Part shown: positions 1,865 to 63,546 of the stretch, one piece after another | How positions within the stretch are numbered: the first letter of the stretch is position 1 | Layout: the number at the start of each line of letters is the position of its first letter | NCBI GenBank assembly: GCA_002269645.1 | Contig: NIVC01000332.1 | Location: 35,218 to 99,217 of the forward strand | Direction of reading: 5' to 3' | DNA from: Macrostomum lignano | Lineage: Eukaryota | DNA: 64,000 nt | Notes under the pieces: generated by a model | Seen by the model: the letters and a program-made list of their open reading frames with translations, nothing else | Databases searched by the model: none | What the model was told of the DNA's origin: nothing | Made by a program: the position numbers and the translations under genes

Positions 1865-2742
<878 letters not shown>

Positions 2743-4444: not shown

Positions 4445-4650
4445 AATAAGACCTAATAAGGGCGCCACAATGGACCTAATAAGGGCGCCACAATGGACCT
4501 AATAAGGGCACCACAATGGACCTAATAATGGCACCACAAAATACATATTAAGGGTACCACAATATATCTAATAAGAGAGCCACAATAGACCTATTAGAGA
4601 CGCCACAATAGAACTAATAGGGCGCCACAATAGAACTAATAGGGCGCCAC
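4445..4650. repeat. ~23-bp minisatellite TAATAAGGGCGCCACAATGGACC
   Basis: About 9 imperfect copies. Confidence 0.85.
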
Positions 4651-5597: not shown

Positions 5598-6294
<697 letters not shown>

Positions 6295-11500: not shown

Positions 11501-13270
11501 CTCCATCTAGCAACCCTTCAATCGGTCACGTGACTCCATCTAGCAACCCTTCAATCGGTCACGTGACTCCATCTAGCAACCCTTCAATCGGTCACGTGAC
11601 TCCATCTAGCAACCTTCAATCGGTCAGGTGACTCCATCTAGCAACCTTCAATCGGTCACGTGACTCCATCTAGCAACCCTTCTATCGGCCATGTGACTCC
11701 ATCTAGCAACCCTTCTATCGGCCATGTGACTCCATCTAGCAACCCTTCTATCGGTCACGGGACTCCAGTCAGTTAGTCGAACTTCAGTCGGTCACGTGAC
11801 TACAGCTAGCGGCCATAAAGTTTACTCTCGTTACCTGATTCACGCCAAAGTCGGCATCCGCAGCCTTGATGGTCAGCGGCCGCGGTCGGCCAGCTTCGCG
11901 AACAATCTGGCCACGCTGCGCATCCTCGGACACTACGCCGTCGGACAGTCTATCGGACAGGAACGCCGGCCGATTGTCATTAACGTCCAGCACATTGACG
12001 AGAACCTCGGTGAGCACGGCTAGGCGGGTGTCCACCGCCTGCACTTGAACGCCTAGACGGAAGAAATCGCCGTGAGTCTCTCGATCGACGGGATTTTTAA
12101 CGATAAGCACCCCGGTGGATGGCGCGATGTCGAACAGGCCCAGCTCGTTGCCGCTAGTAATGGAATACACAAGCGGCATGTCGTTAGCTTTGGCGTCAAC
12201 TTTAATAACGAAACTGCCCGGCGGTGCCTCTTCCACAATCTTGACGTTGTAGTGGTGCTGGCCGAACACCACGGGCCTGTTGGGCTCGTGGTTGATGATG
12301 CGAATGCTCACTAAGCACAGGCTGGCCTTGGGCGGCGAGCCCAGATCGCTGACGGCCAGACTCAGGCTCAGGTTGTGACCGGCAAAGTCTACGAGCAGCT
12401 TTCCGGTGCTCAGCTGTCCGGTCTCAGAGTCTAGGTCGAACAGGCCCAGATCATTGCCTGTTGTGGGATTCGTTTGCGATTTGTTGAATTCATACTCCAG
12501 TAGTAATGAGATAAAATCAGATAATGCAAATTTTACCGTCCAACATACAGCCTGCTTACTGGTCTTTCTGTGTGCCTGCCTTTATATTTGTCTGTCTACT
12601 TGTCCAATTTTCTACCTGCGGCTTGCACACTTATTTGTTAGTTATTTGCTTGTCTACTTGTGCAGACACTTGTCTGTCTTTCCTTCCGCCTGTCTGTCTG
12701 TCTGCATTAGTGTCTTAGTGTCTGTCTGTAGTAGTGTCTTAGTGTCTGTCTGTATTAGTGTCTTAGTGTCTGTCTGTATTAGTGTCTTAGTGTCTGTCTG
12801 TATTAGTGTCTTAGTGTCTGTCTGTATTAGTGTCTTAGTGTCTGTCTGTATTAGTGTCTTAGTGTCTGTCTGCATTAGTGTCTTAGTGTCTGTCTGTATT
12901 AGTGTCTTAGTGTCTGTCTGTATTAGTGTCTTAGTGTCTGTCTGTATTAGTGTCTTAGTGTCTGTCTGCATTAGTGTCTTAGTGTCTGTCTGTATTAGTG
13001 TCTTAGTGTCTGTCTGTATTAGTGTCTTAGTGTCTGTCTGCATTAGTGTCTTAGTGTCTGTCTGTATTAGTGTCTTAGTGTCTGTCTGTATTAGTGTCTT
13101 AGTGTCTGTCTGTATTAGTGTCTTAGTGTCTGTCTGTATTAGTGTCTTAGTGTCTGTCTGTATTAGTGTCTTAGTGTCTGTCTGTATTAGTGTCTTAGTG
13201 TCTGTCTGTATTAGTGTCATAGTGTCTGTCTGCATTAGTGTCTTAGTGTCTGTCTGTATTAGTGTCTTAG

Positions 13271-41700: not shown

Positions 41701-44700
41701 GGGAGATGAGAGAAGGGAGATGAGAGAAGGGAGATGAGAGAAAGGAGATGAGAGAAAGGAGATGAGAGAGGGGAGATAAGAGAAGGGAGATGAGAGAAGG
41801 GAGATGAGAGAAGGGAGATGAGAGAGGGGAGATGAGAGAAGGGAGATGAGAGAAGGGAGATGAGAGAAGGGAGATGAGAGAAGGGAGATGAGAGAAGGGA
41901 GATGAGAGAAGGGAGATGAGAGAAGGGAGATGAGACAAGGTAGAGGAAAGAAGGGAAAGGAGGGAAGAGAGATGAGAGAAGGGAGATATTGAATAAGAGA
42001 GAGATAGGAGAGATAAGAGAAGGCTGAGGAGAGAAGGCTGAGAGCGCTGAGAAGAGGCACAAACCTTAGGCGGGCCGGACTGCTATTGTGAAGTTTCAAA
42101 GGACCCGAGGGCCCCTGGTCTACAGTGTCCCATTGTCAGGCAGGCGCGCACTCTTAAAAATAGGCCTTCATGGTTGGAAGTCGCACGACACGCGACCAGG
42201 CCAAATTTGATATATCAGTCCCAAATTATTGTCAACGCGAGAGGGATTGCTACTGAGTTAAAAATAATAATAACAATAGTTGATTACACCTGCCCTATTG
42301 GGCAGATGTGCAACCGACAGCTCAGCCACAGCTATTGCGCGGTGCATCTGAAGGCTGCGTACGGCTGTTCAGTCCAAGGAATGGGGGGTCGCCACACACA
42401 CCCTCAATTACCCCAGCTAATGCTGGCACCCATTTTACAGCTGGGTGAACTGAAGCAATGCAGAGTTAGTTGTCTTGCTCAAGGACACAAATTGTTCCAG
42501 TTGGATCAAGAATCGAACCCCCGACCTTCAAGTCGTGAGTCTGACGCTCTAACCACTAGGCTACAACCCCCTTACTACCTACAACCCCTTTCTAGGCTAC
42601 AACCCCCCTGCTAGGCTACAACCCCCTTGCTAGGCTACAACCCCCTTGCTAGGCCACAACCCCCTTGCTAGGCTACAACTCCCTTACTAGGCTACAACCC
42701 CCCTGCTAGGCTACAACTCCCTTACTAGGCTACAACCCCCCTGCTAGGCTACAACCCCTTACTAGCTACAACCCCTTACTAGGTTACAACCCCCTTGCTA
42801 GGCTACAACCCCCCTGCTAGGCTACAACCCCCCTGCTAGGCTACAACCCCCCTGCTAGGCTACAACCCCCCTGCTAGGCTACAACCCCCCTGCTAGGCTA
42901 CAACCCCCCTGCTAGGCTACAACCCCCCTGCTAGGCTACAACCCCCCTGCTAGGCTACAACCCCCTGCTAGGCTACAACCCCCCTGCTAGGCTACAACCC
43001 CCCTGCTAGGCTACAACCCCCCTGCTAGGCTACAACCCCCCTGCTAGGCTACAACCCCACTGCTAGGCTAAAACCCTCTTAAGCCTTCTACTGCGGTAGC
43101 TTCTGACTGAGATACTCATACCCATTGTCAGAGTATCCTACAGTACATAATGTATTGCAAAACATTTTTCAAATTTTTTCTATGGCAAGTGTCCATTGAT
43201 AACTTTTTAATGTGCTCATCCGGTACATAATCAGCTCAAGAGTTCGTGGACACCTGGTACGCTGAAGTGCACAATTTCAATTGGCGAAGCTTAGAAGATC
43301 AGTTCGAATGCAGTAAGTTAAATATTTGAAAAACCTAAGAGCAAAAACTTGCTGACAGTCGCGGCAGAGTGAGAAAAGACTCGCTACATTGAATGGCGCT
43401 CACCGATCGATTCCGAAAACCGCAGGTCATTTTGCCCAAGTGGTCTGGCGCGCCAGTCGCGAGGCCGGCTTCGGCAGAGCCATCTCCATGTCCGGCTGCG
43501 TCTACATTGTTGGCCGCTACCGTCCGATGGGAAATAATCCCGGAGAATTTCCAAGAAACGTTTTGCCGCGCGTGTCCAGAGCTCGGGCCTCTGGGAGTGA
43601 GTTTGCTTGCTAAAGACGACTTTGTTGCCGCTCATAAGACATCTCTGCTAGCACTAAGGAAATTCTCACCCCTAGCAAGTAGGTAGCGGCGTGTAAATCT
43701 TGCATTTTACTGGCTTGCTCATCCCTCTGTTACAAACAGACTATCGAGCATCGCGGGTGTCCGGCATAGCAGCTGACAACAGGAAAGGAGAAGCTGCTGC
43801 TCCACTTGCGCCTCGGTCGCCGAAGGCGGAGCGAGAGCCGTCGTCAGACCGAGAGCCCGCCAAACGAGTGCCGACGCCTCCTGCCGTCAAGTCATCTCCG
43901 AGCTCCGCACCAGAAGCCCCGCTATCAACAGCGACTAATGAGGAGCCCGCCCCATCTACTAAGTCTTTGTTCGGCGCTCCTGGTGCCAAGTCTTCGGCTG
44001 GCCCTACTGCCTCGGCGCCTGTATCGGCGATGTCTTTGTTTGGCTCCTTAAAGTCAAAAGCTCAGGGCCCGGCCAATTCAGAGCCTGCCTCGTCTAAGTC
44101 GCTGTTTGGCGCTCTGTCGGGAAAATCTGACGGAGGCGGCGCCAAGGGGCCCCTGACCGCCAACATCCTGCACCAGACGCTGGGCGGCTCGCACACTCGG
44201 CAGAAAAGACCCTCAGCTGAAGATCTAGAGGAGGAGGCAGTTCCGGTATGCTTTGCCATATTGGTTTTTAATTTATAATAGAAGATTGAAGGTTTACTAT
44301 AGGTGGACTAGCACTCGGCCCCCCCAGGGGATGGAAGATTTCCGCCTTTATGCCCTGCCGCATAATCCGATGCAATCATAGTTTTTTACAAATATTTTTT
44401 CATACTCGTACGACCTGCGGCAACTCAAAGATTTCTAGTCTAATAGCTAAAAATGCGAAAAAGCAAACATTATACAAATCAACAAACAGGCTTTCAATAT
44501 GCGCAAATTCGTCACCCAAATGCTGGTCTCGCACAACGAGTACCGGGCCCAGCACAAGGCCGGCCCGCTACGGCTTAATCCCCAGTGAACAGGCTGGCCC
44601 AGGACTGGGCAGACGTGTTAGCGATGCGGGACAAGATGGCGCACGATCCCAACTGCTCAAGTAATAACACCGGAGAGAATATCGCTATGAAGTTCCGCAT

Positions 44701-45294: not shown

Positions 45295-48200
45295 TCTCTC
45301 TCTTTAATTTTTCTTCTTTGAGAAGCCAATTTGATGCTTCAGACAAACATTGACTGAGGGAAAAACTGCATTTTAAAATGTTTTATACTCTCGCAGCTCT
45401 AAATATATGACCTGTATTCTCTATATAGCCATTGCTGTAAAACGTCAGCGAACTTAATTATAAGTAGTCAATTGTTAACTAAAACGCAACTACGCTATCA
45501 TATGCCCTGTAAAACCCTACCAGGCGACGTATTCACGGACATGTGGTACGAAGAGATCGACTCGTACGATTGGAACAGCAACGAGATGCAACCCGAGTGC
45601 GGTAGGCAAAACTATTGCTTTCTGCTGAGCTTCTAGAAGAAGAAACAAACAGTAATATGTTAAGATTTCCAACCCCCAAACCAGTTAATGAGGACTGAGA
45701 ATTCTAACTGCAAGCTTCAATCTCTTCACTCTCTCCTCACCGGCCAATAATCTAGGCCTTGTGACGCACAAATCGCATAACCCACAGCTGAGTGTTGCTA
45801 AGCGTATCTACAAAGGAGTTCTCCATCCCATCAATTTGATAATCATTGGCAGGCCATTTCACCCAGCTAGTCTGGAAGTCCACTACAGAGGTCGGTTTCG
45901 GCCGGGCCGTGTCCGACACCGGCCGAGTGTACGTTGTAGGCCGCTACAGACCGCCTGGCAACTATAAAGGAGAATTTAGAAAGAACGTTCTACCAAGCGC
46001 TGATGATGGTGAGCGATGCTGGCCGCATTGCAACTTCATACTTGACAAGCTGGAGGGTTGGTTATTAATAAAAAGGCTAATCCAGGACGGGCAACGTAAT
46101 CAATTAAAAATGGATAAGATACGAGGAGGGTTAGAAAGATTTACACTCCATCTTGAGTGTGGGCGGGTCTAATGTACATTGATTGATAATCAGTCGATCG
46201 CGAATAAGTGTACATTAGATAAGTGATGGAAGACGGTCTGAGAGAAGACTGGGAGAGATAAGGATGCACGTGAGAGACGAGTCGCTTAAGTTCAGTAGAG
46301 TGTCCTAAAATATGATTTAGAATGGTCAATCGATATTCTATTCTAAATTCTATTTTCCAAGACAAAACCACCCAGGCACAAAAGCAATTAGTTTTCACCC
46401 TTATTCCACCAGCCGCTCCCCAATATTTACCCAATTTAGAAATTTCATCACGTGACTGCATGCTTTTCAATCTTTATTATCTATCCAGCCGGCCTCCTTA
46501 TCTTTGCATTAGCGTAAAAAAAGTAGCATGGAGTAATGACATCTGTGCTGCATATACTATATGCAATGCACATGTCTACCATTGCACAGATTCAAGCACC
46601 AGTATCATTATCGATTGTAAACTTTTCTATAAATAAATGTACTTTTACATGTCTGTTCGTGTCCAATATAGACTACTAATTAGTAGCTAACAGATTTGTG
46701 TTCAACTAAACAGAATAAAGCACCTGTCACTGCTGCCCAATATCTCTCTCCAGTGGTGAAAGCAGCCGGCGAAGAGATCGTCAAGGAGCCAATGATGATG
46801 CCGTCGCCGATTTCGTTCGCGATGCGCGACTTTGGCGCCGCGAAACGTCGCTCGGTGACGTTCAGCACCGGCGCCGGAGGGGGCGGAGGGAGCGCCGCAA
46901 TGCGCAACCTGACCGACTTTGTGCCGCAGCGCAGCGCCGATGGTGGCGGCGGCAAAGCGGCCTCGAGTCCGGTGGCGGCGCTGCTGCTTCGCCAGACACT
47001 GCAGCAGAGCCACGTGCGAGCGCCGGAGAAAAAGGAGGAGACAAAATCCGATGAGAAAGTGAGCAGCTCAGCTCAGTTGTTTTGCTTTAATACAGTTTTA
47101 GAACACCGGATTCATGTGAACAGCAGACTGACACAGAACTAGTGCCTAAAATAACGATGAAAGAGTCAGGGCAGCTCTTACATCCTGTGCGAGAGTGTGC
47201 CTCCGTACTTATCCGTATGCATGCTCAGGTGTCAACGAAATCAGACAGGCCTTATTGCCTCCTATGGCGGGCTGACTCTGCGGGTCACCTGAATTTGCAC
47301 CTGCATTCCCACTCCCTTCAAAAGTACACATTTACTTGTAACTACCAGGCCCCAAGGCACATCCCGTAACGCTGTTGTTGCTGTTACGTGAAACCCGGGT
47401 AAGGCAATTCTGCCCGTTCCGCTGTACTCCTGAGGGCAGACATGCTCTCACACACACAGCTCACACAGGGTGTACAGCGGCACTGACTTTCTAATCGTCA
47501 GGCATATACAGTCTCTGTGCCTTGGGGTGTTGGCCCTCATGGTTTTGAATGACATGACAAACCCCCTGGGCCAATTTTCGTGCACACACAAGCCCCAAAT
47601 GAATGTGGTTGCGCGGAATCGAACCACGGGTTCGTAGCGAGAGAGTCAGACGCGGTTGCCACCGCGCTGCTCTGCCACATAATCTCAACATATGTGTAGA
47701 CTGATTTTTATAGACACCAAAGCAGAAATTTGCTATCTAAATTCATCCGACCCTCAGATCTTCAGCCAGAAGAAATTCGAGAACCAGCTGTTGGTGTCGC
47801 ACAACGAGTTCCGAGCGTTGCACCGGTCGCCGCCGCTGCGCCTGAACCCTGAGCTGTCCAGGCTGGCCCAGGCCTGGGCGGAGGTCCTGGCCGGCAAGGA
47901 CAAGATGGCGCACGATCCCAAATGCAGCTCGCTCGGACTGGGCGAGAATGTGGCTATGAAGTTTAGAAAAGGATTCACTAATTTTCCAGGTAATGCTCCC
48001 GTTTTGAAAATATCATTTTTGCACCTTGGATCCTGCAATGCTAATCTTCTTCTTCTTGCTCGGCAATTCTCTTTAAAGGCGATCTGTTTTCCGAGTTGTG
48101 GTACCACGAAATTGATCAGTACAAGTGGACAGGCGAGGATCAGCTGGCCTGCGGTGAGCAAATGGCCGAAGAGTTTAGGAATGAAAATGTTTGAGGATGT

Positions 48201-49420
48201 GACAGTTTGGGGATGTGACAGTTTGAGGATGTGACAGTTTGAGGATGTGACAGTTTGAGGATGTGACAGTTTGAGGATGTGACAGTTTGAGGATGTGACA
48301 GTTTGAGGATGTGACAGTTTGAGGATGTGACAGTTTGAGGATGTGACAGTTTGAGGATGTGACAGTTTGAGGATGTGACAGTTTGAGGATGTGACAGTTT
48401 GAGGATGTGACAGTTTGAGGGTGTGACAGTTTGAGGATGTGACAGTTTGAGGATGTGACAGTTTGAGGATGTGACAGTTTAGAGATGTGAACACCAACTG
48501 CTGGACCATCTAGCACAACGCTGACTCGATGTGATCCCGCATCGCAGGCCATTTTACCCAGCTGGTCTGGCGATCTTCAACCGAGGTCGGTTTCGGCCGG
48601 GCGGTGTCCAAATCCGGCCGGGTCTATGTTGTTGGCCGGTACCGCCCACCCGGCAACTACAGCGGACAGTTTGGCCGGAATGTGCTGCCCCCATCCAGGG
48701 GTTTGTTTCTGTTTTTTCGACCCTTTATTATAGAGTACTTCTGCTAACGTACCTGCCTACGCACTACCTATCAATCTCTCTACCTACCTACTGACCTACA
48801 TATCTAGAAAACTTCCTACCTACCTACCTACCAATTTACTTACGTTCCTACCTACCTACCTACCTACCTACCTACCTACCTACCTACCTACCTACCTACC
48901 TACCTACATACCTACCTACCTACCTACCTACCTACCTACATACCTACCTACCTACCTACCTACCTACCTACCTACCTACCTACCTACCTACCTACCTACC
49001 TACCTACCTACCTACCTACCTACCCACCTACCTATCAATCTGTCTATCTCTCTACCTACCTATCTACGTACCTACCTTTCTGCCTACCAATTGCCTTCTA
49101 ATCTGTCTACCTACCCGGGCGGCATTTCAGTGATGCCGAAGTCGCGCAACAACATAATTAACCGGAGCAACCTCCAGGCTGACAAGAAGGCAGCAGCTGC
49201 CAAGGCGGTCAATGCGGCAAATGAGGCGCAAGCGGACGCCAATGTTGAATACGCGGGCTTCGGCACTGCCAGGGTCGTGGAGAGGCGTCAGGGATTGACC
49301 GCGTCAAATCTTCGGGCTTTGCCGTTGGCTTCAACTGTGCAACAGCAGCAGCAACAGCAGCAGCAACAGCAGCAGACACATCAGCCACACAAGCAAGTTT
49401 CGCTAAACCCTTCCAAATAA
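38451..49420 (+). CDS. Triple-CAP-domain (SCP/PR-1, GAPR-1/GLIPR2-like) protein without evident signal peptide, ~994 aa, 14 exons
   Basis: Exons 38451-38790, 40058-40134, 41089-41320, 43235-43312, 43426-43596, 43740-44245, 44490-44720, 45524-45601, 45853-46008, 46694-47058, 47758-47989, 48079-48153, 48548-48700, 49131-49420. Three copies of HNExRxxH..PL, GENxA, WYxE, xHFxQxVW, VYxVGRYRPxGN. Phases are consistent after restoring one missing base near 44585. The true start codon is uncertain. Confidence 0.85.
38921..39230 (+). mobile_element. Probable tRNA-derived SINE, family B copy
   Basis: A-box-like AGTTCAGCGGT, B-box-like GGTTCGATTC; body matches reverse complement of 47395-47670 and, more distantly, 40222-40510. 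Confidence 0.7.
39256..39540. repeat. 28-bp minisatellite GCGCCAGAGTTCCCCAGGGTTCTGTTTT
   Basis: About 10 near-perfect copies. Confidence 0.95.
40058..40134 (+). CDS. Triple-CAP gene, small linker exon
   Basis: cttttcag|AT ... AGT|GTGAG; 77 nt, phase 1-0; connects the previous exon to the CAP1 exon in frame. Confidence 0.6.
40222..40510 (+). mobile_element. Probable SINE family B, diverged copy
   Basis: GTAGCCTAGAGG...GGCTCGATTCC head; shares GAGGGCCAAC..CAAGGC, GTACATG, CTGTACAC, GGAGTC.GCGGAATGG.CAG with 38921-39230. Confidence 0.55.
40545..41112. repeat. 95-bp tandem repeat, 6 copies, spanning the CAP1 exon a splice acceptor
   Basis: CCTCCTGCAG|AATGCAACCACGCGCAAGTTCGC recurs with AG ending at 40613, 40708, 40803, 40898, 40993, 41088. 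Confidence 0.95.
41089..41320 (+). CDS. CAP domain 1, exon a
   Basis: [27 protein letters not shown]...GIGENVA; 232 nt; G|GTAAG. Confidence 0.92.
41389..42115. mobile_element. Related MITE-like element with expanded 14-bp GA-rich array (41520-41940)
   Basis: GCGGGCCGGACTGCTATTGTGAAGTTTCAAAGGACCC shared with 21267-21310; interior (GAGATGAGAGAAGG)n. Confidence 0.4.
42262..42570 (-). mobile_element. tRNA-derived SINE, family A, full-length copy
   Basis: Reverse strand reads GTAGCCTAGTGGTTAGAGCG (A box)...GGTTCGATTC (B box), then TGTGTCCTTGAGCAAGACA...CCCAGCTGTAAAATGGG (SINE core-like) and a (TTA)n-type tail; near-identical copy at 55470-55783. Confidence 0.85.
42556..43075. repeat. 19-bp minisatellite GCTAGGCTACAACCCCCCT
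   Basis: About 27 copies starting at the SINE 5' end. Confidence 0.95.
43235..43312 (+). CDS. CAP domain 1, exon b
   Basis: [16 protein letters not shown]; 78 nt; A|GTAAG. Confidence 0.88.
43426..43596 (+). CDS. CAP domain 1, exon c
   Basis: [19 protein letters not shown]...[12 protein letters not shown]...NVLP; 171 nt. Confidence 0.92.
43740..44245 (+). CDS. Triple-CAP gene, linker 1 exon (Pro/Ala/Ser-rich, 3x SLFG)
   Basis: aaacag|AC ... CCG|GTATG; 506 nt, phase 1-0, stop-free. Confidence 0.8.
44490..44720 (+). CDS. CAP domain 2, exon a (apparent 1-nt deletion at ~44585)
   Basis: [22 protein letters not shown]...LNPQ-/-NRLAQDWA...GENIA; 231 nt versus 232 nt in the two paralogous exons. 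Confidence 0.85.
45058..45302. repeat. (CTCTCC)n and (CT)n microsatellites
   Basis: Directly visible. Confidence 0.95.
45524..45601 (+). CDS. CAP domain 2, exon b
   Basis: [16 protein letters not shown]; 78 nt. Confidence 0.88.
45853..46008 (+). CDS. CAP domain 2, exon c
   Basis: [19 protein letters not shown]...[12 protein letters not shown]; 156 nt. Confidence 0.92.
46694..47058 (+). CDS. Triple-CAP gene, linker 2 exon
   Basis: ctaacag|AT ... AAA|GTGAG; 365 nt, phase 1-0; contains KRRSVTF. Confidence 0.78.
47395..47670 (-). mobile_element. Probable SINE family B copy
   Basis: Reverse complement similar to 38921-39230, including the B box (plus strand GGAATCGAACC). Confidence 0.7.
47758..47989 (+). 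CDS. CAP domain 3, exon a
   Basis: [22 protein letters not shown]...MAHD...GENVA; 232 nt. Confidence 0.92.
48079..48153 (+). CDS. CAP domain 3, exon b
   Basis: [16 protein letters not shown]; 75 nt. Confidence 0.88.
48190..48482. repeat. 16-bp minisatellite GTTTGAGGATGTGACA
   Basis: About 18 copies. Confidence 0.95.
48548..48700 (+). CDS. CAP domain 3, exon c
   Basis: [19 protein letters not shown]...YRPPGN...NVLPP; 153 nt; donor GTTTGT at 48701. Confidence 0.9.
48770..49080. repeat. (CCTA)n microsatellite
   Basis: Directly visible. Confidence 0.95.
49131..49420 (+). CDS. Triple-CAP gene, terminal exon (poly-Gln tract)
   Basis: atttcag|TG phase 1; open to TAA at 49418-49420; AATAAA ~90 nt downstream. 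Confidence 0.75.
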
Positions 49421-49632: not shown

Positions 49633-53210
<3,578 letters not shown>

Positions 53211-53868: not shown

Positions 53869-54094
53869 ATGGCCGTCAGTTGGCTGTCTGTGTCTCTGTC
53901 CTTAGTCTTGCTTGCTGTCTTTCGGCCGGCATCGGCAGCATCGTCTCTGGAGGCTGAGGCCTGCGCCGCATCGGCCGCCTATTCGCCTTTCTCGCTAGGC
54001 AGCGGCGGCAGCGCGGCCTCGGTTCGGGTGCCCGTGCTGGCGGCGCTGCGTCGGCCCGGCACCGACGGTTTCGGCTGCTCGCATCTGGTTGAAG
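53869..54094 (+). CDS. Multi-VFT gene exon 1 (signal peptide)
   Basis: ATG, hydrophobic leader; G|GTGAGT, phase 1. Confidence 0.82.
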
Positions 54095-57000
54095 GTGAGT
54101 CAGGGCTTTAGTCAGGATTTTTATTAGGGTACGGCGTCTTTCATGTACACCATCGTGGGGGCGCCAGCACACAAGCGGCGCCAGCACCAAAGCGGCGCCA
54201 GAACCAATACGGCGCTAACACTAAAGCGGCGGCAGCACGAATACGGCGCTAACACTAAAGCGGCGGCAGCACGAATACGGCGCTAACACTAAAGCAGCGC
54301 CAGCACCAATACGGCGTCAGCACCAAAGCGGCGCCAGCACCAAAGCGGCGCCAGCACGAATACGGCGCTAACACTAAAGCAGCGCCAGCACCAATACGGC
54401 GCCAGCACCAAAGCGGCGCCAGCACCAAAGCGGCGCCAGCACGAATACGGCGCTAACACTAAAGCGGCGCCAGCACGAATATGGCGCTAACACTAAAGCG
54501 GCGCTAGCACCAATACGGCGCCAGCACCGGATTGGCGCCAGCGCCAAAGTAGTTGTTGCACAACTGATGAAACCGCGCGCTAAAATTTTCGAATTTTTTG
54601 CTCCCTAGATCTCCTTTGGACCATAGACAATGAAAAGCATGGGTTCAATAGCTTGGTTATTCCAATAAAGATTTACTTTCTGTAAGAACTGTAAACTGTA
54701 AGAAATTAATTACTTGATTCGACTTTCCACTGGAAAAATGTAATGTAATGTAATGTAATGTAAAGTACGAGCTAAAATGAAATGCAATTTCTTTCCACAG
54801 ACGCCTGGCCAAGCATCAAAGCGTTGGAATGGGCGTTCGATCTGTTAAATAAGGATTCTGGAACGGAAGCCGGCTTGGCAATAAATGACAGCTACATTCC
54901 CGGAGTGAAGTTCGGTGAGTAATTGTGGCTTCACGGCGTCTCAAAGTGCATGAGCTTTGAGTAGCAGGGTTGAGTCAGTGGTCTGTAAAAGTGCATGAGC
55001 TTTGAGTAGCAAGGTTGAGTCAGCGGATTGAGAAACATTAAAAATGGGCTTTTGAGAATAATTTCTCAAATGAACACCTGCATCCGCAGTGCTGAGCGTT
55101 CACGACACCTGCGGCAGGCGCCAGGTGACGGACTCACTGCTGGACTCCATCTTCCCCGAGCTGGTGTCCACCGCAGCCTCCTGCTCAGCCAACCAGACCC
55201 TGGTGCCCGGCGTCATCGGCCCAGCTACCACCGACTCGGCCGTGTCGCTCGCGCCGCTGCTCAACGACTTCGGCATCCCGTTGGTCTCCTACTCGGCCAG
55301 CGGGCCCGGCCTGAGCGACCGCTCGGCCTATCCGAACTTCTTCCGAACCATCCCGAGCGACACCGCCCAGTTTGATGTGAGTTCACGGTGCGATGCTTGA
55401 ACTTCATCAATATTCTAAAATTCAACAGGATGCATCGGGTGCCAGTAGTTTATAGGCTGGAATTATTGTTGTAATAATAATACGAGCGTAATTGATTACA
55501 CCTGCCCTATTGGGCACATGTGCAACCGACAGCTCAGCCACAGCTATTGCGCGGCGCATCTGAAGGCTGCGTACGGCTGTTCAGTCCAAGGACTGGGGGG
55601 TCGCCACACACACCCTCAATTACCCCAGCTAATGCTGGCACCCATTTTACAGCTGGGTGGACTGAAGCAATGCAGAGTTAGTTGTCTTTCTCAAGGACAC
55701 AAATTGTTCCAGTTGGATCGGGAATCGAACCCACGACCTTCAAGTCGTGAGTCTGACGCTCTAACCACTAGGCTACGACCCCCTAACTAGGCCACAACCC
55801 CCTTACTAGGCTACAACCCCCTTTGTCACAACTATTACTGCCATGCGAAGACCACTGCCAACACTTTTGCAGGCAATCGGGGCTGTGCTCAAGCAGTACA
55901 ACTGGACTCACATCGGCATCCTGTACACCACGGACGCGTACGGCACCGCCGGTCAGTCTGCCCTGGTCAGCCTCAGCGCCTCCCTGGGCATCTGCGTAGC
56001 CCAGGCGTCAGCCATCAGCGTTGCGCCAAGCGCAGCGGAAATCTCGTCCGCTCTGGGCCGCCTGCGCGACTCCGGCGTTCGAGCCGTGGTGGCCGTCGTT
56101 TCATTGGCCGACTTCGCGCCACTGTTCAACGACCCGGCGTCCAGCGCCTTCCAGTGGATCATGTCCGACTCGTTCGGCAATCCGGCCGCCCTGCTCAGCG
56201 TCAGGAACGCCCGCGGCCTGACCTCCGTGAGTCTCGGCTACCGAACGAACGACGCTTTTGAGACGTTTTACCTGAACGAGCTGTCCAACGTGGCCAGTAG
56301 TGGCAACGCCGCCTTCCAGCAGTGGTTCATGCAGACCCGCAACTGCACCCTGTCCGGCGGCACCAACCTGGCCAATCCCGGAGCTCCCCCCTGTCCGGCC
56401 TTCAACATGGCCACCGCCACCGCCCAGTACCAACAGAACCGCTTGGTCGAGCCGGCCATCGATGCCGCTTTCGCCTACGCCAGGGCGCTGCGCTCACTCT
56501 GGCAGACAAAATGCGCCGGGGCTCGCGGGGTCTGCGCGGCTCTGCGCGGCGCCACCTATGCTGAGCTGAGCGCGGCGGTGGCTGCGACCGATTTTAGCTA
56601 TACGGCCGCTGAGCGGATTGCCAGGTGAGAGGCTCTATGGCTCTCTGAGGTAGCTTTAATGGTCTCGTCTCACATTGAGAGGCTCAAACGGTCTAGTCTC
56701 ACATTGAGATGCTCAAGTGGTCTAGTCTCATTGTTAGATGCTGAAATGGTCTACTGTAAGTCTCACGATGAGATGCTCAAATATTCTAGTCTCACAGTGA
56801 GATTCGCAAATGGTCTAATCTCAATGGGGAGATTCTCAAATGGTCTACATGTAGTCTCACACTGAGATGCCTAAAATGGTCTAGTCTAGTCTCACGGTGA
56901 GATGCTCAAATGGTTTAGTCTCATAGTGAGATGCTCAAACGGTCAAGTCTCACAATGAGATTCTCAAATGGTCTAGTCTCACAATGAGATTCTCAAATGG

Positions 57001-60000
57001 TCTAGTCTCAATGGAGAGATGCTCAAAGGGTCTAGTCTCACAATGAGATTCTCAAATGGTCTAGTCTCACGGTGAGATTCTCAAATGGTCTAGTCTCAAT
57101 GGGGATATGCTCAAATATTCTAGTCTCACGGTGAGATTCTCAAATGGTCTAGTCCCACACTGAGATTCTCAAATGGTCTAGTCTCACACTGAGATGCTCA
57201 AACGGTCCAGTCTTACGAAAATCGAATTCCCCCGGCAGATATTCGACGGCGAGCAGCGAGCCAGACCGGCGGGTGAAGCAGCTGCGGCTCACGGACACCG
57301 GCGAACCCTACGAGACCAACTACTTTGTGCACAACCTGCGGCAGAACGGCACAGCCTTTGCCTACGTCCGTGTGGGGGTTCGTCTGGCTGGTACCTTCTC
57401 TGAATGGCGGTCCGGCAGCGTGAATGTGTACAACTCGGCCAGGTGAGGCTCATAGCGATTCGTTGCAGGCACTGGCAGCTATATTTTATTACTTAGATTG
57501 AATATGGACTGTCTAATTGTCTATACCTGTCTGACTACCCTTATGCTTACTTTGTCTATCAATATTACCTACCTGTCTACCAGTATACCTACCTGTCTAC
57601 CAGTATACCTACCTGTCTACCAGTGTACCTACCTGTCTACCAGTATACCTACCTGTCTACCTGTAATACTTACATGCCTACCAATATACCTACCTGTCTA
57701 CCAGTGTACCTACCTGTCTACCAGTATACCTACCTGTCTACCTGTAATACTTACATGCCTACCAATATACCTACCTGTCTACCAGTTTACCTACCTGTCG
57801 ACCAATATATCTACTGTGTCTACCTACATGCCTCCCGTCGTCTACCTCTATACCCACCTGTCTACTTGTACCTGTCTATTCAACTGCTCCGTAAACGATG
57901 CAAAGGTTTTAATGCAGCTAGCTAATCGAAAAGTCACCACTACTATTAGTAACACTAAGAATTATCGACTCACCATCGCGCAGGGACGCCGTGATCCCGC
58001 TGCCCCAGTTTGCCTGCCCTGCGGCGCCCTGCTCCGGCTGCCTGGCCGCCGCGCCGGATTTCAAATTCGCCCACGTGCCCGGCCAGCTCTACCTGCTGGG
58101 CGTGTTCTCCGTGCACTCGCCCGGCTCCAGTCCGCGCAGCTGCGGCGCCGTCAGCCTCGATGGCAGCAGCGAGCTGGACGCCTTTCTGTACTCCGTGAGC
58201 CAGGCCAACTCCCTGGTGAACGCCACCGACCTCATTGGCGCCGTGGCAATCGACGACTGCGGCAGCTCCGTGCTGGGCCAGGACCTCGTCGACTCCCTGC
58301 TGAGCGGCGCCCGGAGAATCGCCGGCCTCGATCCCAGCCGCATCATCGGCGTGGTCGGCTCCGGCAGCGCCAGCAGCACCGACGGCATCGCCCAGCTGCT
58401 GGCGGCCCAGCGGCGATCGCTGATCTCCTTCAGGCCAGCCGCTCTGACCTCCAGTCCCTATCTCTACCAGACTGTGGCCTCCGCGTCCGCCGAAGCCGAG
58501 GCTCTGCTGTCCACCCTGGCGTCTCTGTCCGTCAACTACGTCCAGCTGGTCTGCTCACCGGACGCCGCCAACCAGGAGATTGCGCGCCTCTTCATTGCCG
58601 GTGCGCGCTCCCGGCGCATCTGCGTCTCGGCCACCTACGTGATCGGCGTCAACGGCACCCACGCCCAGGTGATGGCCCAGGTGAAAACGCGCACCTCGGC
58701 AGCCGTAGTTGTCGCCTTGGTGACGGCTAGCGACGCGGCCCAACTGCTGCCGCAGGTGACGGCGCCAGTCCAGCTGGTCGGCGGTGTCGCCTGGGGCTCC
58801 AGCCAATCGGCGCTGACTGCCACCAGCGTCAGCCAATCGCAGGGCGTCATCACAGTCGGTGAGCCGCGCCCGGCCTCCGCTACGCCTTACCAGACCTGGG
58901 CTGGTCGGACTCGCGAGCTGGCAAACGAGACAGCCGCGAACCCCTGGTACTCGGAGTGGTACGAGTCCCTGAACAGCTGCTCGCTGTCCGCTGCCAGCAT
59001 GCGCGGCTACACAACTCTGTGCTCTGGCGCCGCCTCGCACAGCCTGACAGCCTCGGCCAGGTACACTGAGTCCGCCTACACCTCCTCTGTGCTGCGAGCG
59101 TCGGCCAGCTACGCGCTGGCCGCTTCAACCCGCCTGAGCCGCGTCTGCACAGGCGGCAGCGGCGGCGTCTGCACCGCGTTCTGGTTCGCCTCCCCGGCCG
59201 GAAACGGCACCGGAACTGGGCTGCAGGCCGACCTGATTGCTCAGCTTGGGGACGGCAGGTTCACCGACCCATCGACTGGTTCGACTTTTACCTTTGCTGA
59301 TCGCTCCGTGCCGACCTTCGGCTTGGCTGTGTACAACGTGAAAAACGGCAGCGCCGCCTACGAGGCCGTGGGAGCCACGGTGCCCGCCTTCAGCCTCGAC
59401 ACCGGCCTGCTGCAGCTCGCTCACGGCGTCGCCACGCTTTCCTCTTCGTGCGGCGACACTTCCCGGTGCAGCGAGTGCGCGCCGTACTTCACTGGCACGC
59501 CAAACTACCTGTACCTACCGGGCGACATCCTTGTCGGTGTTCTGGTCAACGTTCGTTCTCCTGGCAGCTCCGGCGGTGCCTGCGGCCCGGTCAAAACTGG
59601 TGAAGGCTTCGGCTACACCGAGGCCGTTAGGTGGACGCTGGACTACATTAACGGCGGGAACAAGTCAGACGTGCGCTTCGGCGGTTCCGTGAAGCTGGGC
59701 GCCCTCATCTTGGATGTCTGCGGCTCCTCATCAGTGGCCATCAGCCTGGTGACGTCCATCTCTCAGGGCACCCTGCTGCTACCCGACAGGTCGACTGGTG
59801 CCAACATCGACGCGTCAAAGATCCGGAGCTGGGTCAGCTACGGCGACGCCGTGACGACAGCGCTGGCTCCGGTGCTGCGTGACCTCGGCGGCGTTCCGCT
59901 GGTCAGCCCGTCGGCCAGCTCCGACGGCCTGACGGCCCTGGGCGTCTTCCGCACCGTACCAGCCAGCCTGTCGCAGGTGTCTGCCATCATCGCCGTCATC

Positions 60001-63000
60001 AACAAGTTCAACTGGAAGTGCGTCCAGCTGGTGTACTCTAACAATGATTATGGAAACCGGCTGGCTACTGAGTTCCGAGTGCAGGCTCTGCGGGAGGGAA
60101 TCTGCGTGCCACGCTGCCTTGAGGTCGGCACAGACGGTTCGGTGGCCTCCATCCTGTCGAACATTATCCGTGAGTTATACTGCAGAGGATTTAATTTCAA
60201 ATTTTGTATAAACTGACTGATGCGTGAGAAGCAAGTTGGTGAAAATCTCAGCTTTTGGCTCAAAATCAATTTTCTATTTAAGACTTGTGAATCACGTTAA
60301 TGTGAATAAAGTGCATTAAAGTGCGCCGATTAACGAGCATAGTAATGGTTTCAAAAGGGTACCCAGCCGAGTGAGTGAAGCAGAGTTAAGCAGAGTCGGT
60401 CGCGGTTAGTTGGCAGCAGCCCTGAGCTGCAGTTGGAAGACAGAGTGAGAGTTGTCAGCGAGTTGCATGTTACAATAGCAGCGCCCCAGTACACAGACAT
60501 TTTTCTTAGTATTTCGATACTTCAAATCTCAATTTCAACCGGCTTCATTTCACAGTCGACATCTCCAAGACCCGAGTAGTGGTGGTGCTGTCGGACAAAT
60601 CGGCCGACCTCGTCCAGCTGACCGCCGACAACAACGGCCTCGTGTTCATCGCCAGCAACTACTGGGGCGAAATGACGCGCGACAGCGCCCTGAGCGGCCT
60701 GGGGCCGGGCGCCAACAACAGCTGGGTGATGCAGGTGAACTCGCCCGACGTTGCCGGAGTGACGGCCCACCTGAGCGGCCTGTCGGCTGACAGCAGCATC
60801 GACAACCCGTGGCTGGTGCCCTACTACGAGGCGCTGTTCAACTGCAGCACCACGGGCAGTTTGGCTTACAGCTCCCGCTGCAACAACAGCTGGCCAATGG
60901 CTGCCTCGCCGCAGTTCTATCCGGGATTGTTCATGATGACAACCACCAATGCGCTGTTCAGCATTGCCAAAGCCTATGCGGATATGCTGGTCGCTGGTTG
61001 CAACAGCTCCTACACCTGTGAGTCACGGAATACGGGCCGATTGTGACGACTGTTTGAGCCGGTAGCAGGTGTTTAAATGGAGAATCATTCAGTGAGGTGG
61101 GGTGTTTAAATGGAGAATCAGTCAGTGAGGTGGGGTGTTTAAATGGAAATCAGTCAGTGAGGTGGTGGTGTTTAAATGGATAATCAGTCAGGGAGGTGGT
61201 GGTGTTTATATGGAGAATCAGTCAGGGGGTGGTGGTGTTTATATGGAGAATCAGTCAGGGAGGTGGTGGTGTTTAAATGGAGAATCATTCAGTGAGGTGG
61301 TGGTGTTTAAATGGATAATCAGTCAGGGAGGTGGTGGTGTTTAAATGGAGAATCATTCAGTGAGGTGGTGGTGTTTAAATGGATAATCAGTCAGGGAGGT
61401 GGTGGTGTTTATATGGAGAATCAGTCAGTGAGGTGGGGTGTTTATATGGAGAATCAGTCAGTGAGGTGGGGTGTTTATATGGAGAATCAGTCAGTGAGGT
61501 GGGGTGTTTATATGGAGAATCAGTCAGGGAGGTGGTGGTGTTTATATGGAGAATCAGTCAGGGAGGTGGGGTGTTTAAATGGAGAATCAGTCAGGGAGGT
61601 GGGGTGTTTATATGGAGAATCAGTCAGTGAGGTGGGGTGTTTATATGGAGAATCAGTCAGGGAGGTGGGGTGTTTATATGGAGAATCAGTCAGGGAGGTG
61701 GGGTGTTTGAATTCCGAAGTTTCAAAATGATCAGCGCAAAGCAACAATTACGATGAATTGGCTACACTTGCACTCGCACTGCACCCCACCTAGCCGTCTG
61801 CCCGAACTTCTGGTTGAACCCCGGACTGAACGGACAGCTGGCAGACAGGCTGTCTGCTGTCAAATTCCTAGCTCTCGGCGGCAGCAGTTTTGAATTCCGT
61901 TCCAATCGCGATGGCAACATGGGCTGGCTGGCGCTAAACCGGGTGGGCCCGGACTACCTTCCAGTAGGCAGGTACATGTTCAGCGTGCTCAGCGATCTGC
62001 CTGCGTTCCCCAGCCGCAGCTCCGTGTACAGCTCAGTGCCAGCCGCCTGTGCCGATTGCACCAACTGTCCGAAATCGCTGGATAGGACGGAGAAGTTTCT
62101 CTATGTGCCCGGCCAGCTGCTGATTGGTGGTGAGTAATTTAGCTAGCGAAAGCATTTGTCTAAAGTCTACTCGTAATAATGAAGGTGCGAGGTGATGCAT
62201 TTTATCTAAACTGAATGGGTGTGAAATCTGTTTGAAAGAGATCTCGTGCTTCCTATCGGAAGCTAGGCTTTCATCCAATAGGGTGAAGCGAATAGAAATG
62301 TAGTGAGGTGGGCGCCCAGTGGCGTAGGAAACCCGCTGACAGCCAATGGGGTGAAGTGAATAGAAATGGAGTGAGGTGGGTGCCCAGTGGGGCAGGAAAG
62401 CTGTTGACAGCCAATGGGGGCAAAATAAATAGAAACGGAGTGAGGTGGGCGCCCAGTAGGTTAAGAAATCAATGAACAAAAAGGACTTATTTGAGAGAGG
62501 ATGAAGAAAAAATAAAGTTAGAGAGAAGATATACTTTCACTCCTCACCCGCAGGCCTCTTCGATGTGCACTATTCCGGCTCTGTGCCGTTCAGCTGCGGC
62601 AGAGTCAACGGCCAGAACGGCTTCCTTCTGACGGAGGTTTTCAAATACGCCATCGAGTCCATCCAAACCAGTCCGATATTCTCTGGAAAACTTCGCGGCG
62701 TTAAGGTTGGCGGCATCGTCATGGACACCTGCTCGTCAGCTGTGCGCACGGACAGCCTGGTGGCCAATCTGCCTCGCGGCGGGCTCATCGTGCTCCGGGA
62801 CTCCAGCTTGAAATTGCCGAAAATTGTCAAAGTCTACTCGTAATAATGAAGGTGCGAGGTGATGCATTTTATCTAAACTGAATGGGTGTGAAATCTGTTT
62901 GAAAGAGATCTCGTGCTTCCTATCGGAAGCTAGGCTTTCATCCAATAGGGTGAAGCGAATAGAAATGTAGTGAGGTGGGCGCCCAGTGGCGTAGGAAACC

Positions 63001-63546
63001 CGCTGACAGCCAATGGGGTGAAGTGAATAGAAATGGAGTGAGGTGGGTGCCCAGTGGGGCAGGAAAGCTGTTGACAGCCAATGGGGCAAAATAAATAGAA
63101 ACGGAGTGAGGTGGGCGCCCAGTAGGTTAAGAAATCAATGAACAAAAAGGACTTATTTGAGAGAGGATGAAGAAAAAAAAAGTTAGAGAGAAGATATACT
63201 TTCACTCCTCACCCGCAGGCCTCTTCGATGTGCACTATTCCGGCTCTGTGCCGTTCAGCTGCGGCAGAGTCAACGGCCAGAACGGCTTCCTTCTGACGGA
63301 GGTTTTCAAATACGCCATCGAGTCCATCCAAACCAGTCCGATATTCTCTGGAAAACTTCGCGGCGTTAAGGTTGGCGGCATCGTCATGGACACCTGCTCG
63401 TCAGCTGTGCGCACGGACAGCCTGGTGGCCAATCTGCACTCGGGCTCCATCGTGCTCAGGGACTCCAGCTTGAACCGAATTGACCGGAAAAGGTCATGGC
63501 TTACGTGGCTGCCTCCACATCCGAGATGGCAGATCAACTGTCTAGG
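53869..63546 (+). CDS. Class C GPCR (mGluR-like) related secreted/receptor protein with at least 4 tandem Venus flytrap (ANF_receptor) domains; 3' end outside window
   Basis: Signal peptide MAVSWLSVSLSLVLLAVFRPASA. Exons 53869-54094, 54801-54914, 55090-55376, 55873-56624, 57239-57442, 57984-60169, 60556-61017, 61794-62129, 63219-63546 (duplicate truncated copy at 62554). mGluR-type motifs VHDTC, VIGPAT, VSYSAS..LSD...YPNFFRTIPSD, NWTHI..LYTTDAYG. The N-terminal VFT signature recurs at 58081, 59521 and 62111. Confidence 0.85.
54160..54545. repeat. 17-bp-based minisatellite GCGGCGCCAGCACCAAA / ACGGCGCTAACACTAAA
   Basis: About 22 alternating imperfect units. Confidence 0.9.
54801..54914 (+). 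CDS. Multi-VFT gene exon 2 (absent from ORF track)
   Basis: ttccacag|AC; AWPSIKALEWAFDLLN...YIPGVKF; 114 nt, phase 1-1. Confidence 0.85.
55090..55376 (+). CDS. Multi-VFT gene exon 3
   Basis: LSVHDTC...VIGPAT...FFRTIPSDTAQFD|GTGAG; phase 1-0. Confidence 0.93.
55470..55783 (-). mobile_element. tRNA-derived SINE, family A, second copy
   Basis: Highly similar to 42262-42570 (the two ORF-track translations [11 protein letters not shown]... nearly match); in intron 3 of the VFT gene. Confidence 0.85.
55873..56624 (+). CDS. Multi-VFT gene exon 4
   Basis: AIGAVLKQYNWTHIGILYTTDAYG...FQWIMSDSF...IDAAFAYARAL; phase 0-2. Confidence 0.93.
56660..57205. repeat. ~29-30-bp minisatellite GGTCTAGTCTCACAATGAGATTCTCAAAT
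   Basis: About 18 imperfect copies filling VFT intron 4. Confidence 0.9.
57239..57442 (+). CDS. Multi-VFT gene exon 5
   Basis: ggcag|A; LRLTDTGEPYETNYFVHNL...YVRVG; AG|GTGAG; 204 nt, phase 2-2. Confidence 0.82.
57565..57810. repeat. ~20-bp minisatellite CTACCTGTCTACCAGTATAC
   Basis: About 11 imperfect copies. Confidence 0.85.
57984..60169 (+). CDS. Multi-VFT gene exon 6 (all of VFT2 and first part of VFT3)
   Basis: 2186 nt inside the 741-aa ORF; cgcag|G ... C|GTGAGT; phase 2-1. Confidence 0.92.
60556..61017 (+). CDS. Multi-VFT gene exon 7
   Basis: KTRVVVVLS...VFIASNYWG...DNPWLVPYYEALFNC; phase 1-1. Confidence 0.9.
61068..61710. repeat. 33/36-bp minisatellite GTTTATATGGAGAATCAGTCAGGGAGGTGGGGT
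   Basis: About 18 copies filling VFT intron 7. Confidence 0.93.
61794..62129 (+). CDS. Multi-VFT gene exon 8
   Basis: VCPNF...FEFRSNRDG...CADCTNC...LYVPGQLLIG|GTGAG; phase 1-1. Confidence 0.9.
62554..62843 (+). pseudogene. Truncated duplicate of multi-VFT exon 9 inside a ~665-bp tandem duplication
   Basis: Near-identical to 63219-63475, degrades after VANL, and runs into re-started intron sequence and a stop. Confidence 0.75.
63219..63546 (+). CDS. Multi-VFT gene exon 9 (start of VFT4; apparent 1-nt deletion in the A-run at 63488-63491)
   Basis: GLFDVHYSG...SCG...VMDTCSSAV; adding one A gives DRKKVMAYVAASTSEMADQLSR ending at donor GTGGGT. Confidence 0.75.

Follow-up and report, generated by a model that had tools for sequence, protein, structure and literature searches.

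G protein-coupled receptors (GPCRs) of class C have, in the textbook account, one Venus flytrap domain (VFT) per subunit and act as dimers. A locus of the flatworm Macrostomum lignano raises the question whether a receptor of this class can carry a whole chain of such domains. The locus lies in a stretch of 64,000 nucleotides (contig NIVC01000332.1 of assembly GCA_002269645.1, positions 35,218 to 99,217, forward strand), referred to here as the window and numbered from its first letter. An earlier note, made from the letters of the window alone, had proposed at 53869-63546 a receptor ectodomain of the metabotropic glutamate receptor (mGluR) type with at least four VFTs in one polypeptide. We found that the gene encodes one chain of tandem mGluR-type VFTs in one spliced reading frame. 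Sequence comparison places it in a receptor family that is conserved widely among animals and whose members chain two to five VFTs, and probably it represents the 5' portion of an M. lignano gene for a class C (mGluR-type) GPCR with several VFTs.

One spliced reading frame encodes tandem Venus flytrap domains

The receptor gene was read on the + strand from a start codon (ATG) at 53869 to the end of the last visible exon at 63546. Nine exons were visible and all introns were of the GT..AG type. The open-frame segments lie in shifting frames and are spliced into one reading frame via canonical splice sites; the seven introns between exons 1 and 8 have GTGAGN donors and CAG or TAG acceptors, and the exon 8/9 junction has a GTGAGT donor and a GCAG acceptor. 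The product encoded in the window is 1610 aa long and consists of a signal peptide, three complete VFTs and the start of a fourth. The earlier note had described one spliced frame in which a signal peptide is followed by repeated restarts of the N-terminal pattern of the VFT, and the positions given for these restarts were exact (GQLYLLGVFSVH at 58081, GDILVGVLVNVR at 59521 and GQLLIGGLFDVH at 62111). The 64-kb window ends within intron 9 of the gene, of which we infer that about two-thirds is in view.

The boundaries between the units were informative. The VFT2/VFT3 junction lies inside exon 6, itself contained in one open frame of 764 codons, as had been noticed when VFT2 and VFT3 were said to share this exon. 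The VFT3/VFT4 junction lies inside exon 8. With these two boundaries inside exons, the units cannot be separate genes.

In order to identify the units, the protein was cut at its three linkers and each part was scanned singly against Pfam ANF_receptor (PF01094, cutoff 25.4 bits). All three complete units passed: VFT1 (aa 1-528) at E 6.7e-37 and 127.8 bits, VFT2 (aa 529-1013) at E 5.7e-15 and 55.7 bits, and VFT3 (aa 1014-1491) at E 2.7e-20 and 73.2 bits. The roughly 139 visible aa of VFT4 scored E 0.046 and 13.2 bits, under the cutoff. This fragment aligns to the N-termini of VFT2 and VFT3 and is completed as a full VFT in a public M. lignano protein, P0151 (see below). Together with co-linear relatives in other phyla, these results uphold the count of at least four VFTs in one polypeptide.

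By sequence, the best matches in the PDB were the solved ectodomains of mGluR2 and mGluR3 (E ~5e-24 with VFT3). The AlphaFold model of the exon 6 product (VFT2 and half of VFT3) had a mean predicted local distance difference test score (pLDDT) of 75.6, and Foldseek matched it to mGluR2 VFT crystal structures at E ~1e-25 with TM-scores of 0.73-0.75 (target-length normalised), so that structure prediction, which had been suggested as a check, returned the mGluR2 VFT fold. Pairwise identity among the four M. lignano units was only 17-26%; the repetition within the chain is therefore old, and neither recent duplication nor the assembly accounts for it.

Apart from the signal peptide, no segment of membrane-helix-grade hydrophobicity was found in the 1610 aa, and no transmembrane (TM) segment was found in the 1919-aa public model P0151. 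In the Pfam scans there was no match to NCD3G (PF07562, the 9-Cys domain) in any unit of the window, no Lig_chan match in the window protein or the scanned relatives, and no cyclase or kinase match in the visible portion of the receptor, the C-terminus of which lies beyond the window. The claim of more than 1500 aa of ectodomain without a 9-Cys domain or TM helix therefore stands, at 1610 aa.

Relatives in other phyla share the multi-VFT plan

A word-indexed homologue search with the 741-aa exon-6 open reading frame (ORF) gave no match. Since an exhaustive HMMER search with exon 6 returned 799 matches at E <= 1e-3, the gene's own product among them, the empty result was a failure of sensitivity and not evidence of absence. 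The best non-Macrostomum HMMER matches were proteins of 2700-2870 aa with 5-6 matched stretches and about 28% identity, and the co-linear relatives span 2700-2900 aa with about 28-31% identity over the whole visible length.

The domain plan of selected relatives was determined with Pfam. Five ANF_receptor domains followed by one C-terminal 7tm_3, the seven-transmembrane (7TM) domain of class C receptors, were found in P0002, P0003, P0004 and the amphioxus protein P0159. Saccoglossus and Centruroides proteins had four ANF_receptor domains and 7tm_3, and an amphioxus "mGluR3-like" protein had two and 7tm_3. NCD3G matched none of the relatives scanned with Pfam, in the five-VFT set as elsewhere. 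The earlier note had advised a search of proteomes for proteins with several PF01094 domains, and the relatives returned by HMMER include such proteins, with two, four and five VFTs plus 7tm_3.

Domains were then counted over all matches with a VFT profile built from the family. Five VFTs were counted in the nemerteans Tubulanus and Lineus, the brachiopod Lingula, amphioxus, and the molluscs Babylonia, Argopecten, Sinanodonta, Physella, Bulinus, Lymnaea, Ruditapes and Octopus. The same profile gave four VFTs in Saccoglossus, the crinoid Anneissia, the brittle star Amphiura, scorpions, a mite and a crayfish. Examples of five-VFT records are Tubulanus XP_074641006.1, Babylonia XP_076434694.1, Lymnaea P0154 and Branchiostoma P0159. 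All relatives were labelled "uncharacterized", "hypothetical" or "mGluR3-like".

Two nucleotide records are evidence for one chain that is independent of eukaryotic gene prediction. The gastropod-like protein P0155 is encoded by a single uninterrupted ORF of 8610 nt on a Logan contig of 8823 nt. A second contig, L002 (Logan SRR12548983_10985, 1-8726, GC 41%), carries ORFs for VFT2-VFT5 and 7tm_3 in the same order on one strand, each matching the same-numbered part of the Tubulanus protein. The L002 sequence is divided into five consecutive ORFs with very short gaps, one pair being 2 nt apart in different frames, which suggests tiny introns or sequence errors.

The units also correspond by position. 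In a BLAST matrix of single units, each of M. lignano VFT1-4 had its top score, or one a few bits below it, with the VFT of the same number in Tubulanus, Babylonia and Argopecten. Across the spiralian matrices VFT1, VFT3 and VFT4 were top on the diagonal in most comparisons and VFT2 was at or near the top; Tubulanus against Babylonia gave a clean five-by-five diagonal. Such position-by-position matching indicates that the five-VFT order predates the split of flatworms, nemerteans and molluscs. Against the amphioxus units only VFT1 and VFT2 corresponded clearly, and deuterostomes may have multiplied their internal units independently. VFT1 stands apart as a type of its own that can be recognised in Tubulanus, amphioxus and Centruroides as well as in the two-VFT proteins. 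The 7TM of Tubulanus was closest to mGluR3 and mGluR2 (E 1.8e-18).

A second kind of two-VFT protein was found in P0041 (Patella), P0047 (Lingula), P0085 (Nucella), P0042 (Batillaria) and P0055. These have two tandem VFTs and a single hydrophobic helix, after which comes a Ser/Pro-rich tail of ~270 aa. P0041, P0047 and P0085, the three scanned with Pfam, had no 7tm_3 match. In the two-VFT proteins of molluscs and Lingula the units correspond to VFT1 and VFT2 of the five-VFT set, and these short proteins may be a separate single-pass receptor family that uses the same VFT1-VFT2 module.

Some long matches were set aside. The Polypterus models named 'CASR protein, partial' (P0016, P0018; 2496-3927 aa) were not counted as members; they consist of 7-11 partial VFT pieces with the same half-domain repeated and look like fused tandem genes. 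Up to 11 partial pieces, with a profile segment of about 148-470 recurring, were seen in P0016, P0018, P0028, P0071 and P0077, which are probably fused or mis-assembled tandem genes of the OlfC/V2R type. Fused long models of this kind are a source of false 'multi-VFT' matches in database surveys, and the only vertebrate matches that were traced to their source look like fused gene models. The three-VFT Branchiostoma protein P0013 (1846 aa) matches VFT3-5 of P0159 at 833-946 bits per unit, which makes it an isoform shortened at the N-terminus, a paralogue or a truncated model; a three-VFT class of its own is not indicated.

Public M. lignano records extend the chain beyond the window

Two public M. 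lignano proteins correspond to the gene. P0001 (UniProt A0A1I8I1E6) was the top match of the exhaustive search, and P0151 (UniProt A0A1I8IKL0, 1919 aa) falls in the same 90% cluster. The window model shows zero amino-acid substitutions relative to either; the differences are choices of gene model. P0151 is without the first exon and without 12 aa of the window model. In A0A1I8I1E6 a stretch of 22 aa in exon 4 (about 56750-56820) is frame-shifted, and here the window has no such error. Neither public model is full-length, and the only domain names they bear are automatic ones.

P0151 runs past the window. It contains the rest of VFT4, including VTNVVQVPVISYAATMSS, and then ends in NCSLAGSCDTVCPNLGRN, a fourth three-cysteine linker. 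This terminal linker, NCSLAGSCDTVCP, is homologous to the VFT4-VFT5 linker of the relatives, so the chain continues past VFT4. The extension of the gene model that the earlier note had called for was hence achieved in part: it added a complete VFT4 and the fourth cysteine linker, and VFT5 and 7tm_3 were seen in relatives only. When P0151 VFT4 was used as a query for the VFT5 and 7TM of M. lignano itself, only non-Macrostomum fragments were returned, one of which led to contig L002; Ala/Ser-rich matches were also examined. One candidate, P0161, was rejected as a different and very divergent protein.

At two places the window copy departs from the public proteins. At 63484-63485 it has CC where both public proteins, which read NRIDPEKVMAY at this site, need CCC, giving a 1-nt frameshift within VFT4. 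The other is a tandem duplicate on the + strand at 62162-62828, recognised by repeat search and sequence reading, which takes in intron 8 for the most part and, as copy A, a truncated exon 9. This duplicate, ~666 bp long, is 99-100% identical to 62829-63495, and its exon part occupies 62554-62828. The two copies of the duplicated unit are identical over ~610 bp and then show many differences and indels over the last ~55 nt (62773-62828 in copy A vs 63438-63495 in copy B), which is odd for a simple duplication. Copy A lacks a donor site, and neither public protein model contains it. It was rejected as an alternative exon, having no 3' part and no donor, and splicing it to copy B shifts the frame.

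Linker cysteines and ligand-site residues

The class C cysteine pairs were regular in every M. lignano unit. After each VFT comes a linker with three cysteines, C-x(2-5)-C-x2-C, and no 9-Cys domain, and about 10-16 residues separate these cysteines from the PG(Q/D) strand of the next VFT. The linker cysteines were invariant across a co-linear alignment of nine sequences from four phyla. In the relatives only three cysteines stand between VFT5 and the first helix, as read in Tubulanus.

For residue comparison mGluR2 was aligned by L-INS-i to the 44 units of the five-VFT set and the motifs were checked; its sequence was taken from the PDB alignment, with a numbering consistent with that of the mGluR2 literature. 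A quick placement of mGluR2 with mafft --add had misaligned the motifs and was discarded. An equivalent of mGluR2 Cys234 was present in 44 of the 44 units, including all four of M. lignano. In mGluRs this residue bonds to the first cysteine of the cysteine-rich domain. The loop that in mGluR2 holds Cys121 bears the inter-subunit disulfide, and a cysteine in this loop was found in every VFT1 unit and every VFT5 unit of spiralians, whereas VFT2-4 units had none. The VFT1 loop cysteine was also present in the four-VFT and two-VFT proteins.

At the positions of the mGluR2 residues S145, T168, Y216 and D295, M. lignano VFT1 has T, S, Y and D, VFT2 has A, A, A and V, VFT3 has D, S, Y and N, and VFT4 has S, T, Y and T. 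The backbone-binding residues are kept at all four sites in VFT1, at three in VFT4, at two in VFT3 and at none in VFT2, which is more degenerate than its counterparts in relatives. In Tubulanus all five units have S/T, T/S and Y at the first three sites, and the fourth is D or E. In most five-VFT relatives VFT1 and VFT4 also have S/T, T/S and Y at these three sites, and the fourth-site D occurs mainly in VFT1; no other unit retains the loop cysteine together with the amino-acid-binding motif as consistently as VFT1 does. The residues R57, R61 and K377, which contact the glutamate side chain, were conserved in no unit of M. lignano or the relatives.

Exon structure of the gene and neighbouring features

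All exons lie on the + strand. Exon 1 (53869-54094; ORF with GTGAGT donor) encodes the start codon, the signal peptide (MAVSWLSVSLSLVLLAVFRPASA) and the N-terminus of VFT1 with Cys32 and the first disulfide cysteine, Cys70. The signal peptide is the strongest hydrophobic segment in the protein, and the N-terminus is identical to that of A0A1I8I1E6. Exon 2 (54801-54914), encoding part of VFT1 lobe 1, was defined by a CAG acceptor, a GTGAGT donor and consistent phase, and matches P0001 and P0151. Exon 3 (55090-55376), also in VFT1, carries the loop cysteine Cys145 and the ligand-backbone motifs GPATTDS and SYSAS; its ORF alone matched ANF_receptor at E 2.5e-14. Lobe 2 of VFT1 and the return to lobe 1 are encoded by exon 4 (55873-56624; ANF_receptor E 9.2e-16), which contains Cys250 of GIC, the Tyr and Asp motif residues and the pairs Cys367/383 and Cys423/430. 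The C-terminal strands of VFT1 follow in exon 5 (57239-57442), the acceptor of which was placed by phase and by alignment to VFT2 and VFT3; this exon again matches P0001 and P0151.

Exon 6 (57984-60169), with two ANF_receptor stretches, comprises linker 1-2 (Cys539/544/547, 58015-58041), the whole of VFT2 (57985-59439), linker 2-3 (Cys1017/1023/1026, 59449-59478) and the N-terminal half of VFT3. Exon 7 (60556-61017; CAG acceptor, GTGAGT donor) encodes VFT3 lobe 2 and the return, within the VFT3 Pfam match and the mGluR2 alignment. Exon 8 (61794-62129) holds the end of VFT3 (to 62035), linker 3-4 (Cys1496/1499/1502, 62048-62068) and the first strand of VFT4 (PGQLLIGG). Its acceptor was picked by homology to VFT2 (VCTAFWF vs VCPNFWL), and the exon matches P0001 and P0151. 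Exon 9 (copy B, 63219-63546), obtained by direct sequence reading, encodes VFT4 lobe 1 as far as ...STSEMADQLSR.

Several repeats were found in and around the gene. An (AGTT)n microsatellite of 3.2 kb and about 800 copies (50006-53208; GC 26%, extreme GC skew) ends about 660 bp upstream of the receptor start codon. Introns 1, 4, 5 and 7 contain minisatellites (54160-54549, 56658-57213, 57553-57865 and 61068-61712) with periods of 17, 29, 20 and 33 nt, respectively, and 15-23 copies. An interspersed repeat of ~300 bp occurs at 55470-55790, in receptor intron 3, and at 42260-42620, the copies being about 97% identical. Read as its reverse complement, the 3' part of the repeat resembles a tRNA (the GGTTCGATTCC box), and the repeat is probably a tRNA-derived short interspersed element; ARAGORN found no tRNA genes in the 64-kb window.

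Upstream on the minus strand lies a very large FAT-like cadherin gene (7931-35224). Its first coding exon (31814-35224) encodes 1136 aa with a signal peptide and at least five cadherin repeats, resembles the N-terminus of FAT4 and matched Pfam Cadherin at E 1.4e-79; further exons were located at 23073-23705, about 10747-12311 and 7931-8758. Between the cadherin and receptor genes there is an ORF on the + strand (47692-48234) with a match to the CAP/SCP (cysteine-rich secretory protein) domain (E 4e-06).

A proposed receptor and alternative explanations

In view of its sequence relatives, a five-VFT GPCR of the mGluR type is the most likely identity of the M. lignano protein; its VFT5 and 7TM would lie beyond the window. 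VFT4 would be followed, as shown in the relatives, by a fifth VFT, the last three-cysteine linker and a single mGluR2/3-like 7TM. The receptor would be located in the plasma membrane as a class C dimer, and the membrane-proximal VFT5 would couple to the 7TM as in ordinary mGluRs. The distal VFTs would provide extra sites for small ligands, which would probably be amino acids or compounds related to them rather than glutamate, and a distal VFT that closes would pass this change on along the chain. By analogy to mGluRs, the relay could be based on a disulfide bond between each lobe 2, via the Cys234 equivalent, and the first cysteine of the following linker. Since only VFT1 and, among spiralians, VFT5 have the loop cysteine, two chains may be tied together at tip and base. 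A bolder reading, which we hold to be less likely than not, is a bilaterian class C branch with two to five chained VFTs in which binding at the distal units would be relayed through disulfide-stapled units to one 7TM.

Several observations weigh against the five-VFT receptor. For the M. lignano gene itself neither VFT5 nor the 7TM came into view, the window ending before them and the public models being truncated, and the two-VFT relatives with a single helix show that a multi-VFT ectodomain is no guarantee of a GPCR. The residues of the binding motif differ among species at each VFT position, and M. lignano VFT2 is without all four. The disulfide assignments are drawn from analogy to mGluR2. 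In the AlphaFold model pLDDT is below 50 at residues 1-24 and 482-506, the linkers, so rigid coupling between VFTs is not supported by the model; as a prediction it neither supports nor contradicts intramolecular pairing of VFTs. The idea in the earlier note that chained VFTs replace dimer partners within one molecule is accordingly neither supported nor refuted. Finally, the window copy has a frameshift and an exon duplication.

Neighbouring single-VFT class C genes or fragments might have been misread as one chain through a merged model or a collapsed or expanded assembly. Fused models do occur among the matches, as in the Polypterus 'CASR protein, partial', and the window contains the near-perfect 666-bp tandem duplication. 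Such an artefact is nevertheless scarcely credible and is essentially excluded for the M. lignano gene: the two internal junctions fall within uninterrupted exons, no 7TM, NCD3G, stop codon or start signal stands between units, the units are too different (17-26% identical) to be recent copies, and the co-linear plan with its invariant linker cysteines recurs in several phyla, once as a single 8.6-kb ORF. It is also improbable that the copy in the window is a defective allele or defective paralogue on its way to becoming a pseudogene, the gene being functional otherwise. The 1-nt deficit relative to both public proteins and the inserted truncated exon 9, which would shift the frame if spliced in, are what this explanation builds on; yet there are no substitutions across about 1600 aa, the splice sites are all intact, the indel sits in a C run, as expected from long-read assembly error, and P0001 is frame-shifted where the window is clean, which shows that assemblies differ by such errors. 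Because the protein is otherwise identical and the public models carry frame errors of their own, we rate the frameshift and the duplication as assembly or allele defects rather than the sign of a dead gene.

The remaining alternatives concern function. The M. lignano protein might not be a GPCR at all but a secreted or single-pass tandem-VFT scaffold, a co-receptor or a sensor signalling through its tail, in keeping with the lack of a TM segment in both the window product and P0151 and with the two-VFT relatives of Patella, Lingula, Nucella and Batillaria, whose one helix and long Ser/Pro-rich tail show that other anchors are possible. We consider this improbable, given that M. lignano VFT1-4 match VFT1-4 of spiralian five-VFT proteins by position, that the Pfam-scanned members of these end in 7tm_3, and that P0151 ends in a linker of the VFT4-VFT5 type, so that the chain goes on. 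The secreted amino-acid-binding scaffold named in the earlier note is unlikely for the same position-by-position agreement with proteins ending in 7tm_3. More serious is the explanation that only one VFT senses ligand and the others are degenerate spacers, a stalk or an interaction platform. In GABA-B receptors a non-binding subunit provides a precedent for a VFT that does not sense. M. lignano VFT2 has lost all four backbone residues and VFT3 two, and among species the motif is patchy at VFT2, VFT3 and VFT5. In bacterial BvgS only part of the tandem VFT array is reported to act as a conventional binding module (PMC4352136). On the other side, the motif of VFT1 and VFT4 is kept in most five-VFT relatives and that of Tubulanus in all five units, and all units have retained the full two-lobe fold and disulfides over deep divergence. 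On the whole we regard the spacer explanation as rather unlikely; for the mechanism it is a live alternative, favoured by M. lignano VFT2. The multi-ligand sensor envisaged in the earlier note is compatible with the residues found at the four sites, of which VFT1 has all, VFT4 three, VFT3 two and VFT2 none.

Comparison with known receptors

Among characterised receptors the closest are mGluR2 and mGluR3, which form group II of the mGluRs. They are the best match of the VFTs in sequence and fold and, in the relatives, also of the 7TM; the same three intradomain disulfide pairs and the lobe-2 Cys234 are shared, and some units have the S/T-T-Y-D motif. In contrast to mGluR2/3, with one VFT and NCD3G per chain, there are at least four tandem VFTs here and five in relatives, and each VFT is followed by three cysteines with no NCD3G match. 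Unlike in glutamate-binding mGluRs, R57, R61 and K377 are not conserved. Among the features of class C receptors, the VFT and the cysteines were thus found, and one VFT per chain and NCD3G were not. GABA-B receptors are also without NCD3G, so that a protein lacking it may still belong to class C (PMC12716839).

With the uncharacterised five-VFT proteins that have 7tm_3, the M. lignano protein is co-linear, shares the linker cysteines and, within Spiralia, corresponds VFT by VFT. These relatives are complete, with VFT5 and 7TM, whereas the M. lignano sequence is truncated in the window and in the public models. The two-VFT single-pass proteins (P0041, P0047, P0085) share the tandem VFTs and the three-cysteine linker; they differ in having two VFTs instead of five and one helix with a Ser/Pro-rich tail instead of a 7TM.

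Ionotropic glutamate receptors have two stacked clamshells per chain, the first of the ANF_receptor family and the second of another type, split by the ion-channel domain. Unlike these, the M. lignano protein gave no match to a channel or to a clamshell of the second type. Receptor guanylyl cyclases, such as the natriuretic peptide receptor, have one ANF_receptor domain, a single TM segment, a kinase-homology domain and a cyclase, whereas relatives of the M. lignano protein end in 7tm_3. Tandem VFTs in one chain are found in the bacterial sensor kinases BvgS and EvgS, which work as dimers (PMC4352136, PMC8174306). These were the only receptors with tandem VFTs that we found described in the searched literature. 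They differ in having two VFTs of the periplasmic-binding-protein type, another subfamily, with a histidine-kinase output in bacteria, and no sequence relationship to them was detected in this analysis.

A 2025 survey of ectodomain plans in the glutamate family describes ANF with NCD3G, ANF alone and Cache with EGF only (PMC12716839). A 2018 metazoan-wide mGluR phylogeny makes no mention of multi-VFT forms. No description of a multi-VFT class C receptor was found in the searched literature, the scope of which took in the GPCR repertoires of flatworms, molluscs and amphioxus and left out subscription journals. The sequences are public but unnamed and the multi-VFT architecture appears to be undescribed, so the novelty, which the earlier note had left undecided, holds for the literature searched and not for the databases, which already contain the architecture as unnamed predictions.

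The multi-VFT family extends over flatworms, nemerteans, molluscs, brachiopods, arthropods, echinoderms, hemichordates and amphioxus, with no vertebrate member evident. For annotation, its coding genes of 8-9 kb are easily truncated, as in both M. lignano models, or confused with fused tandem genes. The family offers natural building blocks for multi-input biosensors. It also raises the questions of how a closure signal is transferred along a row of clamshells, whether each unit has its own ligand and what the receptor senses. A long-range relay across chained VFTs is, to our knowledge, a mode not known for any GPCR. If the bolder reading is true, ligand would bind up to four domains away from the membrane, and the receptor would perform a long-range, possibly multi-ligand integration.

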